The notes under the pieces were generated by a model. That model saw only the letters and a list, made by a program, of their open reading frames with translations. It did no database searches and had not been told where the DNA came from. DNA of 46,498 bases from Lenisia limosa (lineage: Eukaryota > Protista > Breviatea): positions 1-46,498 of the forward strand of contig LPNZ01003347.1 in the NCBI GenBank assembly GCA_001655205.1. Reading direction: 5' to 3'. Position numbers and translations under genes: made by a program. How positions within the stretch are numbered: position 1 is the first letter of the stretch; every line of letters starts with the position of its first letter. Below, piece after piece: positions 8,877-20,600 of this stretch.

Positions 8877-11800
8877 TCAAGTCGACGGCTTCGATAGCTG
8901 ATATGAAGGGTTGTCCTTGGCAAGAGCATCCATCACCTTGAAAGTGAAAACGGTTTGGGATCAACTATTCCCCGCGCCTTCACACCTCTATGAGCTGAGG
9001 GAACGTGAAAGACTCCTTCTGAATGTCCGGGGCCTCCAAAAACGCCAAGAGATGGAATTGGAAACAGAAAGACGGCTAAAGAGAATGGGGAAATGAGAAA
9101 CACAATCAAGTATTATTAAAGTCAACCAGAGACGCATCCCATCATGGTGATGCGGACCCCCACCTGAGGCGCAAGGTCGGACAGAATTACTGTGATTTGC
9201 TCTCTTGCCTGCAATTATAAGATCAATAATGGAGTGTGCATAGAAATGCAGAGTAACCATTGCTATCCAGACACACCTCAGTAAGTTGATCCATAGTAAC
9301 AATTGGGGGTCGTCTGCTCAATTCTGAAGTGGACTGGCCCTTTTTGGTAAGTGAAAGCTGAAACGTGCCCCTTGATCTTTGTTAATATTATCAGTTTACA
9401 ACTCAATGCCTTCCAAAAGACCGCCCACCATCATGATGTTGACGGCCAATTTGACCCGGCCCGGAGCCTCGGAAATCAGGGCCCGACTATCTGAAGAGGA
9501 CAACGGCGGCGGTAGTGGCCTATTATTGACTGGGGGGTTATGGGAATTATAAAACCTCTTTGCCAAAGCAAGTCAATTCTTCTCCACAATTTCTCTGTTC
9601 GTACCCCCAAGACCAAAGACGTGTGACCCACCTGCTGAGCGGACCAAAGCCGAAACGGCTTTCAGTCCCCTCTTGACAACTAGGGGCAGACCCCCGGGGG
9701 CAAGGCCAAAGGAACCCGGGTCCTCAATAATGGGCAGGGCTATTCGGCTGAAAAGTAGTCGTGACGTCACTGAATAATAACGTAACGAGGGCTTTTCTTA
9801 ATATTGAAAAAAGAACATAATAGTGGAAAGAACGCTGATTTTGGAATTAGCATGGAGACGATTAGGATAGACCAAACCTTCAGGAGTACTGGAAGGGAAT
9901 CTTGCGTTTTCATCGTTGTTTACTTGCACTGCCAAAGAAAAGATCGGTCTACAGAAGGTGAGAAACTGGATCATAGAAAATACTATTATGCTAAGTTCTT
10001 AAATTAATCCCACCAAAGAGCATGAAACCCCTCTCTTATATCCACCCACTCCGGCAGCAGGGGGATGGCTGAGCAAACATCGTCAATGACCACTGACGCT
10101 AGGCTGCGGGATGAAACGATATCGAAATGAGGGTTTCATAAACAAAACAGTTAAATAGAAGCATGAGGGTTTCATATGGTGGGGGTAACAGTACACGCAG
10201 CACGTGACCCACTTTGCATAGACCGAAGGATGGTGTCCTCCAGGCGGCGGCGGAGGCGGGTTCCCTGTTCGCCGTCCTGTACTCGGGATATAGGGCTTCG
10301 TGGGGGGGATAGAGAGGACCTGGGGAGAGTGAAATGCATCCGTGTTGTAAATCGCTATATTTCCTAGTGCTAAAGAACTATCGATGAAAGGGTACATGAG
10401 GCCACGGACCTTGACAATAGTGTCGAGAGTTGGTTCGAGAACCGTGCACCAGAACTCATGACAATGCATCATGGTGGCAGTTAGCACCAGGGTCGAGGCA
10501 AAGGATCCACTTTTGAACGCCTGGCGACTTAACGCTACAGCATCAGACAAGTTGAACAGCTGACAAGTTGAACAAGCAGTTATCAGACAATTTGAACACT
10601 NNNNNNNNNNNNNNNNNNNNNNNNNNNNNNNNNNNNNNNNNNNNNNNNNNNNNNNNNCCGCCGTCAGCAGCAGCCGACTCAAGTCCGCTATCTGGAGGGG
10701 TAATGCAAAGAAAGCCAATACTAGTGCCCCGGAAGAAGGGAGGATACCTGGTGTGGCTCACGTAATTTCTGTTCATATTGTGCTGTGCGGAAATATTTAC
10801 TTATGCATGTACAAAGTATAACATGAAATATATGATATGTATCAAAGCAACAAACACACTTGTCATCACCTGCCTCCCCCCCACCTTGTCACTATTTCCT
10901 CGGCTCAGCTCCACTCGAGCTAGAGCCTCACCGCCAGCGCCGCAATAAGAAAACAGCGCCTCGCCTGAAGGGTGAATGTGCTGATTACTTTTGATTGGTA
11001 TGTGAGTTGGAGATTATTAGACAAGAGGCCCACCGAGGGGGGTCATAACGGGGCTGCTCGGAGCAGTGTACATTTTGTCAGTGACATAAGCAGAAGGTCG
11101 TTTGGAGTGGAACGTCTGGGGGTTAGTCGAGTTTAGAGTGGTGTACATACAAAATCAAAAGATTGAAAGCGAGAACTAAGATAAAGAGAATTTGACCAAT
11201 ATGAGCTTAGCGAGACAGCATACCTGGTTGGAAACGGCCTGCAAAATTCCGGTGAAAATCGTTTCTCGTGCGTCTATTTCTCGAACCTGATGAGTGAGAA
11301 TCCACATTTATCACCAAAATACGTATTATTTGTGCCTTTCTGGATGTGATAATTTGCTGTCTACCAAAACACTCTCAGCTGTATAACACNNNNNNNNNNN
11401 NNNNNNNNNNNNNNNNNNNNNNNNNNNNNNNNNNNNNNNNNNNNNNNNNNNNNNNNNNNNNNNNNNNNNNNNNNNNNNNNNNNNNNNNACATGGAGGGCT
11501 GCAATAACCTGGAAAGTTAACACCGGAACCCCTCGCAATAAGTAAAAATGTTGTAATTCACAAATGCACAAATGCACAAATGCGAACACTTACTGCTGTA
11601 TTAAAAAACAATAAAAAAAAAACAGGAAGTCCACCCAGCCCACTTCCGCATTAGAAGGTATCAGAGTCTCAACCGGGAGATCCAGGGGCGACGTAGAGGA
11701 TATCTCCTGTGGGGGGGGGGAGTAAAATGGAGATTTAAGAAACACAAAGCCCAAAATCAACTCTGTTGGCTGACAACACACGAGGGTTGATAACAACAAA

Positions 11801-14800
11801 ANNNNNNNNNNNNNNNNNNNNNNNNNNNNNNNNNNNNNNNNNNNNNNNNNNNNNNNNNNNNNNNNNNNNNNNNNNNNNNNNNNNNNNNNNNNNNNNNNNN
11901 NNNNNNNNNNNNNNNATACGCTTCAGATTATGCTCAACTCTCACCACCAACATTGCAGTATAACTTGACGTTGGACTGAAGAGACTTTGCCAATGCTTCA
12001 AGTGCCTCATTATCGTTGGTGTTACCTAGGGGGTGAAGACTGCAACTGATACACTCGATATCTCGATATATTCGAAGCTGTACTGGTCCAAATTGGAGTG
12101 TAGGAAGCAAAGCCAGGTATTTGAGAGTAACTTTCGTTCTTGTGATTAATATGTATCTTGATCTTGACAACAAAGAGGCAAAGAACCCCTCACCCGCACA
12201 GCCGACGACAGAGGAGGCAAGGAGTTGGCACGCAGTCTGCTGGGCTTGGTCTAGCGCCTTACTGGAGACCATTGGAAGGGGTGCAAGCGAAGGAGCTAAG
12301 GTGTTATTCGGTTCTTCCATGGCAATTGCCCACCTTTGAGGCTCTCCGGGTAAAGTCCATTCTGGTCTGGGTTGGACATTGCCGACGCATACACCCGGCC
12401 GAATGTCAGTGAAACCTGTACCGTGAGTTCACTTATTCCAACCCCCCATGATCCAGAAAACTCACAATATTCCCAACGGGCGACACTCTTGGCCACTTGT
12501 CGGCAATGGCGTGTTTGAGGCCGGCGGCAGCCGCTTGGAGGGGCCATGGGCAGCGGGTCGGATTGTTGACAACTGTCCGAATGGCATCGGATACGGCTTC
12601 ATGAAGGAGATCGTCCGAAGTGTACGGCAGGTCTGGGAGGTTATACCCGGTCGGCTTGGATCCATGATCACGCGAGTCAGTAGAGTAACAGCATGATTAG
12701 GTGGGAGCACGCACAAACTCAGCCAAATCATGAACTTGAAGCTCTCTATGACAAAGACACTTTTCTTTCCAAGCCCCCACCCCCACTTCTAGTGACGCCG
12801 GTCCCATCAATATCTGAGAGGGCTTCGGCGTTATCAAATACATACTCCATGGTAGGTGCCAACATCTGATAGGGGGTGAAAAGGAACTTTTAACCTTCAG
12901 TGCAGCTTGTCACATATTACTGAAACACCATGTATTTGTGTGTGTGCGTGTGAACTTCCATTTAATTGAAGACTCAGACATATCCCACCTCTTTCAAGTG
13001 TTCCATCAGCACGGGGGCAAGAACACTGTGTAAGACGTGCGCGGCGGCCGAGGGTCCCGCTAAAGCTAAACCTGGGGGGGGGGGGGNNNNNNNNNNNNNN
13101 NNNNNNNNNNNNNNNNNNNNNNNNNNNNNNNNNNNNNNNNNNNNNNNNNAAAAATATTGAAGTTAACCCTGACCAGTTGTTTTCAGAATATTAACCACAC
13201 GTATTGCACGCCAATATCCAACCTGGGGAGGGAGAGGTGCAAGCCTCATCATAAATGGCCGTCCTGACAAGATGCGGCGCCATATCTCGATACGCAAACA
13301 GCACCGCCAACGACGCCGGCACCAAGGCTTCAGATGACGTCATCAGAATACCGCGAGCAACCACCTGGGTGATGAATACATCAGACTATCTACTCAACAT
13401 CCCGCACCACCCAACATCCCCGCACCAATGGTCTCGCGTCCGGGGGCCCGGCGTTGGTCTCGACAAGGAGGTTGAGGAGTGCGTCTTGCCCGGGCGTGAG
13501 CACGAGCGCGCTGTCCTGAGCCAACTCCGAGAGAGACAATCCACCACCTTGGCGGTGAGTGTTTGCAGTGAAGTCTCTATTGAACCTAGGATGATACCAA
13601 AAGACACCCACTCTCCTCGTGATAACTGAACCCACCCACCCAGAACCAGCGTTCCACCTTCATCAGAAGAAAGCGACAATATTGAGTCGGATGCTTGGTC
13701 CAAACTAGCCTCAGCCCGAAGGGACTCGTCAAAGGTCTTGTCCTAATATGTTAAGTGTACTAAGGTCTGTCTTTTCCTAATATGGTAAGTGTCAAGTGCA
13801 TCTGCAATAGATACTCCCAAAAAAACAGTCCTGTTGTTTTCAATCTACTTCCCCTTCTCCAGCCGACCTGTAGACCCGTGTCATTGGGACCGAAGGAATG
13901 CAGCATGACACTTTTGAAGAGCTGCAGGAGTTAGACGGTAATTGACGTTCTTTAGCTCCTCACCCCCCACCTCCTCATCAACATGGTCCTTGGTGGCGTT
14001 CTTGTGGTACAAAAGACAGAACAGAGCCGTGGCGAGCAGCAGCGCCACAATCAACGCCGACATGAACCACAGAAACCAGGCTGGGAGGGGGTCTGCCGAG
14101 TCTGTGGCCGGGTAGCACAAGTCAAACGTCTCTCGATCTGAGGCATGAGTGTGTACCACATACAAGAAAGAGTCACATGACTAACCTTTTTCAGGAGTAC
14201 AGAGAATGGAGGGGGCGCAGAATGCCGAGGCTTCGTCCACTGTACTTGTGCACCAGGAGCAGTTGTTGAATGCTGGGGGTAAGGGATATCAAAAGAAGTG
14301 AAAGTGCTGAAGCAGAACAACTATGTATGGACTATGAATGCACTATGAATGCACTATATATGTACTATATTTGTACTATGAATGTACTAAGTATGTATAC
14401 ATACAATGTACATACAACGTATACATAATTTGTACATACAATATATATGTACATACAATGTATGGGTTGGGTCCATCGAATTTATGAGAAACAGCTCAAC
14501 AAAGAAAGCCCCCCCACCGCTTCTTGTCGATTCGGAGCAGCTGACACAATCCGCAAAAGAGCCACATGCCTGTTCAAGAAGCGTGTAGTCTGAAGAAATA
14601 AAATGTCTCGGGGAGGGGCGAAGATTTCATCAAACTGATTCGCAAAACAAAGCCAGCCAGTTGACCACACTACAACGCATTTAAGAGCAAAAAAGCAAGA
14701 CAACACACACCCACCTGGTTCACAAGTGGCATCTCCAAAGCAAACTCCCTCACAATCCATTGAGGAGTTGTATGGCCGGCCTGGGGGGAGATAAGTTAAA

Positions 14801-17800
14801 GATCTCACTGCCTGACTTAACTACGAATGAGCTATGGTCACCCACACACCAAGCCTACTGTTGTCACCCATTAAGCACCCACCTGTAGTGCCGCCAGTAC
14901 ATTCATCACAATAGTCCACTAATGCGCTTCCGTGGCAATCCCCACTAAACAGTAATACATAAGTGGCAATCCCCACAAAACAGTAATACATAAGTGGCAA
15001 AAAGATAAGTAGGTTATTAGGCTCAAGCTCAAACACAAGAAATGTGCCTTTCTAAATAACAATTAACCAATATTGTACCCCCCAACTTGCAATCCATTGA
15101 GCGGTTTGAGAGGATGGTAGCGCCCGGGGTATAACAGTCGCCACACTCGTCAGGAACCTATTGAGTCATTTCACTACGTAGATTGCTACCAACTAAACAA
15201 CTCGACTACATATCATCATACATGTACATGTACATGTACGTGTATATGTTCGAAAGGAGAAATAAGTAAAGGGTATGAATTGCACCAACCTGGAGGCCAG
15301 GGCATCTGAACACACAGAAAGACGACATTGGGAGTACCAAGTTCGGACACATCGTGCTGTTTGCCTGCAAATAGTGATAACACATAAGCATTTCAATAAA
15401 CTGGGAACAATCAATTATCAATTAAAGCAACAATTACATATTATATGATATTATTCAAAAACTGCCCCCCTGCATACCTGATATTCAAAAACTGCCCCCC
15501 TGCATACCTGATATCCTGGGGTTGGTGCTGGGCTCTCCATGGCTCCTGAACAATGAGAAAACCAGATGGAAAACAGGCAAAAGCTGAAGTGGAGACATTC
15601 AACCTACCCAGTTTAGCGGTGTGGCACTCGGACAAGGCATGGCACCATGCACAGTGCACACTGGATGTGCATTCCCCACAACTGCCCAATGTGGAACAGT
15701 CCGGCGCTGGGGTGTGTGACATTCAAATCAAATGAGTACATCGCTATGATAAGTTCTCTATAATACGATGATTACCCCTATGTATTCCTTATACCCCCCC
15801 TCGCCCACGGCATTGATCGGAAGTTGGTATCCAATTGTAGTCCGGGCCGGAGCAAGTCGTATTGTGCACCGGTTGGCATGTTTCACTACTTTCACACCAC
15901 CCGCAGTAGGCATCTGGATCGTGAGATCAGTAGAGTGAAATGAAATGTGGGATTGTTTGGATTATTTGACAATAAAACGCATTTCCGAGAAAAAGGATGA
16001 ATGAAAAGAGGAAGAGAAGAGAATAATAGAAGGATTGCTAAATATCATTGGGTACTTACACTCACCATTGTTACAGTCAGCACAAGTGGACAGAGTTGAG
16101 CAGTCAGGGCAACGGGAATGGTACCAATAGTCTGGTTCTGTTGTGTGCAGGGGGCGCGAAGAACTGCCCCTGGAAGTGGTGAATGGACCATAGTATAATG
16201 CTGCTTACCTCAGACACAATGAAGCCAAGGGGTCCCAACCACAACGCCTGTCGTCAACACACGTGGCACACGCAACACTAAATCGGTCACAATCAAAACC
16301 ACACAAATTAGACAAGTTCTTGGAAATTTACCCACTTTTGTTCGCAAAGAGGACATGAAGAGGCGTCCCAGAAGGAGATTGGACAAGCGAGCGGCAGAAC
16401 TTCCGCATTAGGCAAGTGTGACGGATATGCTTCGGATGAGGACCCGGGTAAACAGGTCAGTGATGACTCACACCAGCCACACCCTGGTGAGTGAGAAGAA
16501 AGTTTGAAAATAATATTGATGATCCAAACATTATTCATACCAGGGCTTGTGTCACACTCAGAGCATGTAGTGAAATTACTACAGAGAGGACCTACAACAT
16601 CAAAGGGATAAATCATTACATCAAGAGTAGTATTATAACCCCCAGGTGTCCTCTATAACCACTCCCCCTACAGGTGTCCCCGTCAGTCAACAATCCGGCC
16701 GAACAAGCCGAACCGAACTGGGTAGAACCGTTTCCAAAAGTGCAAAACTGGCTACTTGGACACCAAGAACACCGCGGATCTGGGCGGTTACAAGGGTATC
16801 AAAACCCAAAGAGGAAGGTCGCAAATAGCCCACATACCCGCAACACAGTCACCACAATTAGCGCTGGCGCAAGAAGAGCACGAAGCGTAGAACCAAACAA
16901 GAGGGTCGACAGAGGAATGATAGGCCCCGGCAGCCGTGCCCCTAAAGTGTAATTTATCATCGCTATCACATCTTAGCCCACCTTAAGCACGTGCCTCCTC
17001 CGGCGTCCCATCCACATCGCTCATCTGAGGAACACTCTGAGCAGGCCGTATACACCCCACATGTGAAACAGGTGCTATTGTCCCAAGCCAGGGCTGGGCA
17101 TTCACGGGGCGTATAAGGCTCAGAGCGGCCTGATTGGTTAATAATCCCTCATGAACCATTGTTTTGCGAACGACGTTTCTTGGTTTCAAATCAACACCTC
17201 TTGCAAATGGCTTACAAAACATTAGAAGGTGAAAAACGAACAAATGATATCATATCATATACTATAGGTAATAGTCGTAGGTCTTCAAAAAACACTTTTG
17301 TTGAGAAATCCTTTATTGTTATCCATTTCACAGGTTCAACGATATGCCATACCCGGTAAGCACTGCTGTGAGGAATCGCACCATCCACACCCGTAGGTCT
17401 CTGAACACTCCGAACAACTGCTAAGGGAGGGGCAATCCAAACCTACAAACCATGAGGCTATTGAGAAATATGAAAGAATCTATGTGAAATGAGAAATGAA
17501 AGCTCAGAAGATTCAAAAACACTTTCAAGAATGAAGATGCTTGCTGAAGACAGCATACACTGGTTATTTTCAAAGGTGTAGTCCAAACATGGCGTCACGT
17601 AAGGCTCAGTGGCGTCTCCGCCAACACACGACGCAGACGACGCGCACCATCCGCAGAGGGGGTCTGTGGGATGATAATGTGTCATCAATCCAAGATATCA
17701 ACTCTACTGAAACCACCAAATGTACTTTGAGGGTTGTAAAAAGTGACTGGTTTTTGCAACAGGCACTGTTATGGATAATTAAACAATAAAAACAGACCAA

Positions 17801-20600
17801 TATCAGCGCCACTAACCCATGCCACAAGCCGTGCATTCTGAATGAGCGTTACAAATGGGGCATTCATTGAAGGCCCACGCTTCCGCCCTTAAACGGTCAA
17901 GTGAAAATGACGAGTTTTACAGAGTAACATTACGGGGGTACAATCGTCTGTACACCAAACAGTGAGCACCATCCCTCATACACGCATTGAGACGTTGTGA
18001 GGTCCACTTTGGTTTGTTCCCAAGGGGCAGAACTGAAGGACGTTACTGTGTACGTTTCAGCTGAGGGTGAAGCATTCTGGGGGGTGAGGATGGTAAGGCA
18101 GGATTGCTTAATTAGCTGTAAAAGGCCAAGTCTATGTTGCAAAACACCGCAGCGAGGGAAGAAAGGCATACCAAACAAAGCTGCGAGAGAGAGCACCAGC
18201 CACAACCGGTGGCAGCGGCGCACTGGTCACATTCAGTTAATTCGCTGCAGTCACTCCCTAAAGGATTAGGGTTTGGAACATCAACAATTCCCTTGAACCA
18301 AAGAATCTCATACTCCACGACTTTACCAATCTCTGAAAAGCCTACCAGAGCTACGAAGAGTGGACGAAATATTCGAATCAGCAACAGCCACAGTCAACGA
18401 CTCAACCACAATGAAAGCTGTCGTGGTTGACGGCAGGGCAAATTGAACTGAGGAATAAGACCGCAATGAGCAATATGACAATGTGGGCTGCATTTACATG
18501 TAAAGTAACTTACCAGCACTTGATGCGTTTGCTGACACTGAAAGAACATGGGGAGTGTCACATCCAAAAACGACTGAGGTCTAAAACTGTCAGACCAAAA
18601 ATACCGATAACAATCAAAAACGCAACGGACTTTTAGAAACATAGGAAAATAGGTCCTGTACCAAACGAATAAACAATATCGGCATGGTCTAAAAACGTAT
18701 CTAATATGAAAACAGAGCCGTTCGCACCTCAACGGAGCCGCTGACAAGGCTGGCCCCGGCCTGTGGTACACAAGGCAGTGTGATGGCTTGAAGATTCGAC
18801 ACCAGGGGGGAGTCCTGCGACGTAAATGAGAATGGATTGAAAACGACAAAAACCAAGATATAAACTCCTTTGAATTCGAACACGAGTGTACATTATGCCC
18901 AGTTACCCCCACAGTTGCAAAGGTGAGAGCATCTATAGTTGCAATACTCCAGGTTCCTGGGTAGTAAGTCTATAGTTACAATACTCCAGGTTCCTGGGGG
19001 GTGAGTCTATAGTTGCAATACTCCAGGTTCCTGGGGGTGAGTCTTTTCTTTGGGTACTGTTGGGGTGAATTGCTCTTCAGTCCTTCCCACCAGTTGTTTC
19101 CTCTTTAGCCGTGATTATGACGGAAGATGGACTTGTGAGAGCCAAAAACTTCAGAGAATGATCAGCCACCACCTTGAGAATCAGAAACAGCTTGACATGT
19201 CCTTAAAACTATACATGTGACAAACACCCACTCTGTAGGATGTGAATGAAGAACCTCCATTGAAGAAGGTTGTCAAATCAAACTGGGAAGTGAGAAGAAT
19301 CTCAAAGGGACTTTCAACAAATACACCATCAGAGTGTTGATATAAAAACTAAACAAGTACATACTGGCAGAAACACATCTCATATTGTCGGTCAAAATTG
19401 ATGGAAAAGATGTAAAACAAAGTCAATTACGTCAATGATCAAACGGTAACAAACCTTCAGGAGAATACCACCGTTCACAGCCAAATGATAGCCAGTTGTG
19501 AACAAAATAGACCTATGCAGTGAGGTGGAGGGTTACGTAGAACTTTGGAAAATAGAATTGATGTAACAATTACATGTTTTCTCAAGAATCACCTAGTCTG
19601 TGGCACGTACACAGCGCTTTGAACAAAACCTGGACCAAGTTTATGCGTGGTTGAGATCTAAGTTGTTACTGCTGTAGTGATAATATATAAGGTAGGTAAA
19701 CTCCATACCTTAAACGTTGAAACGGGTATGACAACTATTTGGGCTTCTCGCTCGTTGGTGGCAAAAATAACTACACTAAGAGGATTAATACCTACAATTA
19801 TCTCGATTAGTGCGGTCATTCAGAGGAACTATCAAATTGTGAGGATATCCACCATATTGATTCCAACGCCTCCACATGATAAATCCCCAAGGTCAAGACT
19901 CACTTTTCAATTGGGTCGTAAACAGCTGTAGAGAACAAGGAAATGGAAACTGTTTCCAACTCAGTCTATACAGTCAAAAGATCAGAAGATCAGAAGAGGA
20001 AGCTAACAGCCCAAGCCCATCTGCAAAGCAACCTTCGTGAAGTAAAACACTTACCCTAAGCCAAAACAGTACAAAAGGCCCCTCACCGTTGCTCCTGACG
20101 CAAGTGAGGTTCGATATATTTTGCCTGGATAAACTGCAGAACTTGAAGCTAAAAAGTTATCATCTGTGCTACCCGTGAAACATAAGAGAATAGATGTTGA
20201 ATAAATATCTTACCGTAATAAGCAAAGCCATCACCAGGTGTAAGGAGGCATGCCAAGTCCTCAATACTTAGGTCAAATGAACCTGTAGGCATTAGGTTGT
20301 TTCAGATAACGCTTTACTATCACTCTTAAATCCCCTCACGAAGAACATTTAGTGTTGCATTGAAGATGTGGAGCGTAGTACCTCCTGATTCTGAAGTTTG
20401 AGATCAGCAGATTCGTTAACAAGGAAGTGCTATTCAAGGTTTGACGATGCCGAGACCAACCTGTCAGGGCCACCCCCAAATTCTGCTCGGCATCATAAGA
20501 GGCCTTGACAACGGCAGATCCCAGGCCAAGTGTCAAGTCATGTGTTGATGCAATACCATGACTGTCGCGTAAGAAGAAAGCATTAAATAAAAACAAAGTT
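8877..20600 (-). CDS. Single-pass receptor-like protein: beta-propeller, ~6 PSI repeats, Cys-rich DCxG repeats, TM helix and two tandem RasGAP-fold domains (5' end approximate)
   Basis: Blade motifs (DGFAYYG, YPGKIYRTSL, STAVYDPIE..VVIFATNEREAQIVVIPV, QSAVYVPQTRSILFTTG) at ~19.2-20.5 kb. PSI units (CSELTECDQCAAATGCGWC, DPLCGWCASSASC, DPRCSWCPSSQFC, CSNFTTCSECDTSPGCGWC, DAYCGWCESSETC, CSTLGSCGECTSSVHCAWC) at 15.5-18.3 kb. DCHGSALVDYCDEC and MDCEGVCFGDATC at 14.7-15.1 kb. TM WFLWFMSALIVALLLATALFCLLY at ~14.0 kb. RasGAP motifs at 13.4-11.7 kb and again at 10.7-9.6 kb. Stop TGA at 8877-8879. Confidence 0.85.

Follow-up and report, generated by a model that had tools for sequence, protein, structure and literature searches.

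The locus considered here raises the question of whether a RasGAP-like domain in a receptor-like protein of Lenisia limosa has kept its arginine finger, the residue that neutralises the charge of the transition state. The window, i.e., the whole stretch of DNA analysed (46,498 nucleotides, contig LPNZ01003347.1), carries this RasGAP-like stretch on the minus strand of an intron-rich eukaryotic gene, where it forms the first part of the cytoplasmic tail of the receptor-like protein. An initial sequence-only reading of the window had proposed that the domain bears Ala at the position of NF1 R1276 and had predicted a pseudo-GAP (GAP, GTPase-activating protein). The best explanation of our sequence comparisons is that positions 11945-13547 (minus strand, as for all window features below) encode domain 1, the nearer to the membrane of a tandem pair of RasGAP-fold domains (hereafter domains 1 and 2) that are both highly diverged and lie in the cytoplasmic tail of a receptor-like protein with PSI repeats and a single membrane pass. 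Domain 1 has Ala in the catalytic-arginine column and is most likely catalytically dead, that is, a pseudo-GAP; we put at about two in three the probability that it serves as a non-catalytic structural or regulatory module, a figure that includes a GTPase-binding variant of this reading.

Alanine in the arginine-finger column

The finger loop and the helix that follows it are encoded by the finger exon, (G)LALAGPSAAAHVLHSVLAPVLMEHLKE (12989-13071), which has a C13-AG acceptor and a gtggga donor and aligns to the RasGAP profile without gaps. The helix before the finger loop is encoded by the preceding exon, VVARGILMTSSEALVPASLAVLFAYRDMAPHLVRTAIYDEACTSPSP(G) (13223-13364), as placed by the exon model, the NF1 diagonal and the profile alignment. 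The splice between these two exons, which the sequence-only reading had assumed, proved to be canonical GT-AG and in phase 1: the donor CCCCAG/gttgga follows 13223 and the C13-AG acceptor precedes 13071, yielding ...SPSPG-LALAGPS.... All of the peptides quoted in that reading were also located in the window, namely VPASLAV..DEA (13242-13322), CTSPSP (13224-13241), AGPSAAAHV (13034-13060), MLAPTMEYV (12839-12865), SLTFGRVYASAMSNP (12368-12412) and LAKSLQS (11973-11993), and the codon that it named, for the first Ala of AGPSAAAHV, is indeed GCG (13058-13060).

The finger column, which we take to be that of NF1 R1276 and p120GAP R789 (the numbering of the sequence-only reading), was aligned with the Ala of LALAGPS in both the profile of NF1 fragments and that of 25 RasGAP domains described below, and the alignment contains no gap in the stretch that begins with the helix preceding the loop and ends with the LxP helix following it. 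The GCG codon is identical in an independently assembled contig. Among 54 pairwise alignments (nine orthologues under six scoring schemes), the Arg column stood opposite this Ala in 31, and none of the other registers placed Arg or Lys in the finger column. Moreover, no Arg or Lys occurs from -17 to +21 residues around the Ala, whatever the exact register; the finger loop itself, CTSPSPGLALAGPS, is rich in Pro, Ser and Gly. More than one base change would be needed to convert GCG into an Arg codon. As aligned, domain 1 thus has Ala where PF00616 has its catalytic-arginine finger, and the proposal of Ala at the R1276 position is borne out by both profiles. In domain 2, the finger column is occupied by Lys (QAFKSGSFAST), and FSR is found instead of FLR.

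The 5' end of the finger exon contains three tandem in-frame acceptor AGs (CAG GTTTAG CTTTAG, 13060-13077), the additional ones lying at +6 and +12 nt. Use of these alternative acceptors would remove two or four residues of the finger loop, and the Ala before GPS is maintained in all three cases.

Assembly gaps and an independent contig

Several runs of N interrupt the gene, and one of them (13087-13149) falls within the intron that separates the finger exon from the SPSPG exon (13072-13222), where a hidden exon supplying an FR motif would have changed the picture. Two sequencing runs from one study were available, one of DNA type (X1) and one polyA metatranscriptome (X2). In addition, a look-up of one open reading frame of the window in public assemblies recovered the ENA contig ERZ3820729 NODE_1574 (10.6 kb; hereafter L001), which shows no difference from the window in any of the ten domain-1 exons and spans both the gap at 13087-13149 and that at 11802-11915. 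As its 33x coverage matches run X1, L001 and the window probably share one source sample, and L001 represents an independent assembly rather than an independent isolate.

In L001, the 63 N of gap 13087-13149 correspond to 42 real letters, all of them intronic, and the complete intron measures 130 nt, from gt to C13-ag (L001 9120-9249). An exhaustive enumeration of this 130-nt intron revealed no open, phase-preserving AG...GT segment. No phase-keeping exon is therefore possible within it, and an FR-motif exon hidden in the gap, the outcome that the sequence-only reading had named as fatal to its proposal, is excluded.

The other gaps were likewise mis-sized. The 114 N at 11802-11915, downstream of the donor NVGG/gtgaga (after ..YCNVGG), represent about 74 letters, and the 99 N at 11390-11488 represent 60 real letters. 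At 10601-10657, 57 N are replaced by 103 letters in an X1 DNA contig, and an X2 RNA contig bridges 10658 and 10535 with 71 letters; this gap therefore conceals some 24 codons of domain 2, those for the helix just before its Lys 'finger'. The estimated gap lengths are thus wrong in both directions, and coordinates that cross a gap are unfit for arguments about reading frame. Beside the gap at 11802-11915, the segment 11735-11801 has a summed contig depth of about 155,000 and hundreds of loose ends in X1, as contigs break at this repeat of very high copy number; L001 also ends there.

A probable diverged RasGAP-fold domain

Two NF1 queries were used for the comparison with known RasGAPs: the NF1 string given in the sequence-only reading and a string from the FLR region. 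They retrieved 34 and 43 NF1 exon fragments annotated with PF00616, with identities of up to 98-100%, which shows the first string to be genuine NF1 sequence. The NF1 alignments and profiles were built from the invertebrate-type fragments and one frog fragment only, and many vertebrate fragments from Logan contigs were left out (P0007-P0030, P0034-P0050, P0053, P0056-P0059, P0061, P0063-P0065, P0067-P0069, P0071 and P0073-P0077). The best full-length ungapped diagonals between NF1 and domain 1 gave z-scores of 3.7 and 5.75, and the score of fragment P0002 was matched by none of 500 shuffles; the gap-free register to the NF1 GAP-related domain (GRD) described in the sequence-only reading was thereby recovered. 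Semi-global alignment to the NF1-fragment profiles gave z = 3.6 for the finger region, z = 2.95 for the FLR region and z = 4.5 for their sum. When the NF1-type FLR profile was run over 1,951 six-frame fragments of the window, the top match was the FLR exon of domain 2 (E = 0.026).

A broader profile was derived from metagenome contigs, in which a scan with a degenerate FLR pattern identified 80 loci. From these, 25 non-redundant domains of 285 residues were cut, representing three subfamilies (NF1-like, Ira-like and fungal GAP1-like); six of them were checked and matched PF00616 with E = 1e-32 to 1e-70. With a local HMMER model of these 25 sequences and 1,952 targets, domain 2 ranked first (E = 1.6) and domain 1 third (E = 3.2), in the expected register but without significance. 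In a home-made semi-global test with a Henikoff-weighted profile of 210 core columns, domain 1 scored -7.3, compared with -80.9 +/- 8.7 for its shuffled versions (z = 8.4; reached by 0 of 200 shuffles), and domain 2 scored -2.3 (z = 10.3). The reversed sequences of the two domains scored -67 and -56, respectively, and 59 real 268-residue non-GAP segments taken from the fetched loci had a mean of -81, a standard deviation of 16.5 and a maximum of -41. An alternative register suggested by local HMMER and hhalign, which sets LHSVLAPVL on LreLlepl and places Glu at the finger, was not favoured by the global alignment. Taken together, these comparisons make a good case, though one built on a home-made test, for domain 1 as a RasGAP fold that has diverged very far.

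Other RasGAP fingerprints in domain 1

Catalytic RasGAPs are recognised by three fingerprints: the finger loop, the FLR motif, and helix alpha7 with the variable loop (PMC9408373). The second of these has the form FLRxxxPAxxxP (PMC12871552). The corresponding region of domain 1, FGRVYASAMSNP, lies in the exon VSLTFGRVYASAMSNPDQNGLYPESLK(G) (12334-12415) and reads FGRxxxSAxxxP: G has taken the place of L and S that of the first P, with F, R, A and the final P retained. The FLR-to-FGR change proposed in the sequence-only reading is therefore present as written; however, a three-residue indel nearby makes it ambiguous whether the FLR-Arg column holds Arg or Thr, as R was aligned there in 32 of 42 pairwise alignments and T in the other 10 as well as in the profile alignment. 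The distance from the finger to the FLR motif is 128 residues in domain 1 and 115 in NF1, which gives domain 1 about 13 extra residues.

In the exon (G)NTNDNEALEALAKSLQSNVKLYCNVG(G) (11945-12025), assigned by the exon model and the profile alignment to an alpha7-like helix, AKSLQS stands opposite SKILQN (SKxLQN), and the Lys and Gln of alpha7 and the variable loop (K213 and Q216) are kept. Among the 16 columns that are invariant in the 25 RasGAPs, nine are kept by domain 1 and seven by domain 2. Besides the finger, the losses in domain 1 are, in profile numbering, G56L, C152A, P185S, R206E and N220S.

The sequence-only reading had also placed a probable extra exon of about 36 amino acids before LAKSLQS. 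A candidate of this kind exists, APSLAPLPMVSSKALDQAQQTACQLLASSVVGCA (12194-12295): it is open in the needed phase, has a ccttag acceptor and a gtgagggg donor, comprises 34 codons from phase 1 to phase 1, and has a G + C content of 0.62 compared with 0.47 and 0.42 in the flanking introns. The score against the 25-sequence profile was -9.6 with this optional exon and -7.3 without it, which we treat as equal. Homology does not require the exon, as direct splicing around it (NP-23 residues-AKS) costs merely a two-residue insertion relative to the profile. The exon has an alpha7-like SSKALDQ of its own (PMVSSKALDQAQQ) at the canonical distance from the FLR motif, and, if included, SSKALDQ could replace AKSLQS in the alpha7 position. 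Two alternative alpha7 candidates are thus found in consecutive exons, SSKALDQ in 12194-12295 and LAKSLQS in the next. The residue at the finger is unaffected by this choice.

Transcription and splicing

The gene is transcribed and spliced. In the RNA contigs of X2, three introns (14138-14185, 10692-10884 and 9530-9631) are removed exactly at their GT-AG borders. The first of these, a 48-nt intron before the transmembrane exon, had been predicted before its removal was seen in X2. For 11805-13475, no contig from X1 or X2 was displayed (a filter hole), yet X1 contains every sampled word of this region.

Possible roles of domain 1 and alternative explanations

Substitution of the arginine finger abolishes the activity of RasGAPs (PMC9408373). 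Domain 1 is predicted to be catalytically dead because its finger Arg is replaced by Ala and no Arg or Lys lies nearby. If GAP activity was lost in this way, domain 1 may now have a non-catalytic role, either by partnering domain 2, structurally or in its regulation, or by offering a small GTPase a place to dock close to the membrane. The pseudo-GAP prediction of the sequence-only reading is thus upheld as far as it concerns a RasGAP-like domain with an Ala finger, but its addition that the domain binds GTP-Ras without hydrolysis 'as IQGAP GRDs do' is not supported, as IQGAPs do not bind Ras through their GRD (PMC12871552).

A more basic doubt is that domain 1 might be no RasGAP homologue at all, its likeness reflecting chance or the composition of a helical region, a wrong exon model, or decay, and the following results speak for such doubt. 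Pfam searches with nine stop-free pieces gave no RasGAP match (none at E <= 1 for single exons), phmmer against PDB sequences with five exons gave no match for domain 1, and in the Atlas feature search the 63-aa exon of domain 1 returned sigma-70 noise and its FLR piece nothing, whereas the domain-2 FLR exon was called RasGAP at 0.95. Curated profiles, PDB sequences and a language-model search thus recognise no piece of domain 1. BLASTP revealed no colinear similarity between domains 1 and 2, and local HMMER and hhalign with the NF1-only and 25-sequence profiles gave E = 3.2 and 0.1-0.2, none of them significant and all at the level of noise, so that the significance for domain 1 depends on the home-made semi-global test. 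A word-index search with one domain-1 exon found no relatives, an exhaustive phmmer search with a domain-1 exon over 1.84 billion representatives found just a spurious repeat protein (P0001), and the exact 30-mer of the finger exon was absent from JGI metagenome contigs; none of these three sources yielded an orthologue showing conservation of the Ala. Finally, the finger junction 13223/13071 is without RNA coverage in the X2 contigs, as is the region 11805-13975 as a whole. Against this, the semi-global score lies far beyond the shuffled, reversed and real-protein nulls, two separate regions of NF1 align colinearly, ten consecutive exons share one frame with canonical splice sites, and RNA contigs show splicing of flanking exons of this gene; we regard this alternative as distinctly improbable. 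A PDB match of the domain-2 FLR piece to 1NF1 (E = 1.8) was noise that vanished with exact exon borders.

If the RasGAP fold is accepted, two further alternatives concern its function. In the strict GTPase-binding variant, domain 1 would have kept its surface for Ras/Rap-GTP and would act at the membrane as an effector-like trap or sensor that does not hydrolyse. The surviving interface positions (the alpha7 Lys and Gln of AKSLQ, and the Ala and the terminal Pro of the FLR motif), the probable retention of the FLR Arg and of 9 of 16 invariant columns, and an intact open frame in an expressed gene, which argues for retained function, all point in this direction. However, the FLR Leu is replaced by Gly, the first Pro of the motif by Ser, the invariant R206 by Glu and N220 by Ser, and because these further family-invariant residues are lost besides the finger, GTPase binding by domain 1 is not a prediction of ours. 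Mutation of either the finger or the FLR motif abolished the binding of RasG by the Dictyostelium RasGAP IqgC, which, like the absence of Ras binding in IQGAP GRDs, tells against a trap (PMC12871552), and the GRD of IQGAP1 binds CDC42 only weakly and independently of the nucleotide (PMC9408373). We consider this strict variant unlikely. The other alternative is an active GAP with a different catalytic device, such as a residue provided in trans (the domain-2 Lys or a partner protein), an Asn-thumb-like residue as in RapGAPs, or residues of the substrate GTPase itself. GAP families without an arginine finger do exist (PMC9408373), and the lack of Arg in both tandem domains could hint at a shared non-canonical mechanism; in the RasGAP fold, however, every tested substitution of the finger abolishes activity (PMC9408373), no candidate residue was identified in the sequence, and the finger loop offers no polar catalytic candidate other than Ser and Thr, which makes catalysis by domain 1 highly improbable.

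Thus, a non-catalytic module remains our preferred explanation of domain 1. Were it dead, the receptor would combine a degenerate membrane-proximal copy with a less degenerate copy bearing a Lys finger, a simple and testable system for studying the function of a RasGAP fold without a finger in receptors. It seems quite doubtful to us that a receptor with two finger-less RasGAP folds (Ala and Lys), instead of switching a GTPase off, would capture or sense GTP-Ras/Rap at the membrane, or would hydrolyse by a Lys-based or in-trans mechanism; if true, this would mean that a plexin-like signalling logic was invented independently outside animals and choanoflagellates.

Comparison with known systems

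IQGAPs have been the textbook pseudo-RasGAP for decades, and pseudo-GAPs in general show that a catalytic fold can be recycled as a binding or regulatory module. Like domain 1, the IQGAP GRD combines the RasGAP fold with a replaced catalytic arginine, a degenerate FLR motif, and a GAP activity that is predicted or shown to be absent (PMC9408373, PMC12871552). The differences are that IQGAPs have Thr and YYR, whereas domain 1 has Ala and FGR; that they are soluble scaffolds with CH, IQ and RasGAP_C domains, whereas domain 1 belongs to a protein with PSI repeats, a transmembrane helix and a tandem of GAP-like domains; and that they bind Cdc42/Rac and not Ras, domain 1 being the membrane-proximal half of a tandem pair. 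In the IQGAP1 GRD, the variant T1046R brought no gain of activity. The IQGAP GRD is the closest functional analogue, yet domain 1 lies outside the IQGAP family because it has Ala and FGR instead of Thr and YYR and a different architecture; the likeness is limited to a RasGAP fold that lacks the finger.

The similarity of domain 1 to the catalytic RasGAPs of PF00616 (the neurofibromin GRD, p120GAP, fungal Ira and GAP1) runs colinearly through about 210 columns of the profile. The LxP helix, the FLR motif and alpha7 keep their spacing relative to the finger, and the residues retained include Lys and Gln of alpha7, the last Pro of FLRxxxPAxxxP, and several invariant positions with Leu, Pro or Gly. 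Domain 1 differs from these RasGAPs in the finger Arg (Ala), the FLR Leu (Gly) and the loss of more invariant residues, and it is too diverged for curated models to detect its single exons.

Like this protein, plexins combine an ectodomain of PSI repeats with a single transmembrane helix and a RasGAP fold on the cytoplasmic side. Their target is Rap, and they differ in having one GAP domain that is split by a Rho-binding domain and retains its arginines, whereas two complete tandem domains without the Arg are present here. A plexin cytoplasmic domain (PF08337) was also considered for the tail and rejected, as finger-like and FLR-like segments occur within each of domains 1 and 2; moreover, none of the Pfam-scanned exon pieces matched Plexin_cytopl. 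Plexins are known only from choanoflagellates and animals (PMC6374515), and the present gene bears on the origin of plexin-like 'ectodomain plus GAP' receptors outside animals.

Tandem pairs of an enzyme and a pseudoenzyme occur in other receptors, where the pseudo copy serves as a structural or regulatory partner or as a docking surface. By analogy, the D1/D2 domains of receptor tyrosine phosphatases and the kinase/pseudokinase pair of JAK may be compared with domains 1 and 2, in that a catalytic fold is repeated and at least one copy is without its catalytic residue; the fold is a different one, however, and here the canonical residue is missing from both copies, which have Ala and Lys instead. 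In itself, the absence of the finger from a strongly diverged RasGAP-like domain would not surprise specialists; the unusual part is that one transmembrane protein carries two RasGAP folds in tandem, both finger-less.

Layout of the gene

The exon model was built by hand from canonical GT-AG sites. Its ten exons (14137-13971, 13921-13868, 13742-13658, 13547-13426, 13364-13223, 13071-12989, 12865-12761, 12654-12466, 12415-12334 and 12025-11945) join into a single open frame of 370 codons, with a G + C content of 0.43-0.66 in the exons compared with 0.39-0.53 in the introns. The N-terminal part of domain 1 is encoded by the exon GGLSLSELAQDSALVLTPGQDALLNLLVETNAGPPDARPL (13426-13547), which has canonical splice sites and an open frame and lies outside the coverage of the 25-sequence profile. 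Downstream of the finger exon, the exon MLAPTMEYVFDNAEALSDIDGTGV...ERK (12761-12865) was placed by the exon model and the profile alignment, in which its HLKEMLAPT is aligned with YLKQLLEPL of the RasGAP profile; its 3' boundary is uncertain owing to the choice of donor. The exon PTGYNLPDLPYTSDDLLHEAVSDAIRTVVNNPTRCPWPLQAAAAGLKHAIADKWPRVSPVGNI (12466-12654) was placed in the same way and gave no match when searched alone.

The helices that should follow alpha7 at the C-terminal end of domain 1 (11945 to about 11290) could not be modelled, and part of this region may lie in the N gap at 11390-11488. The next clear exons beyond 11945 are 11286-11224 (VREIDARETIFTGILQAVSNQ) and 11115-11034. Domain 2, the second RasGAP-like domain, occupies 9396-11286 and ends with a stop codon at about 9396-9398. 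Two of its exons, 10098-10046 (..CSAIPLLPEW) and 9928-9878 (VQVNNDENARFP..), could not be joined in frame through GT-AG sites; the interval may contain a non-canonical intron, a micro-intron or a small exon that was overlooked.

On the other side of domain 1, the ectodomain (15441-18393) contains cysteine-rich, PSI-type repeats, recognised by their visible CGWC motifs and by Pfam PSI matches with E = 3e-4 and 9e-4, both weak and under the curated cut-off. Between these repeats and domain 1 there is one hydrophobic helix with basic residues after it (FLWFMSALIVALLLATALFCLLYHK), and the transmembrane exon, which contains PAWFLWFMSALIVALLLATALFCLLYHKNATK (13971-14137), lies directly upstream of domain 1.

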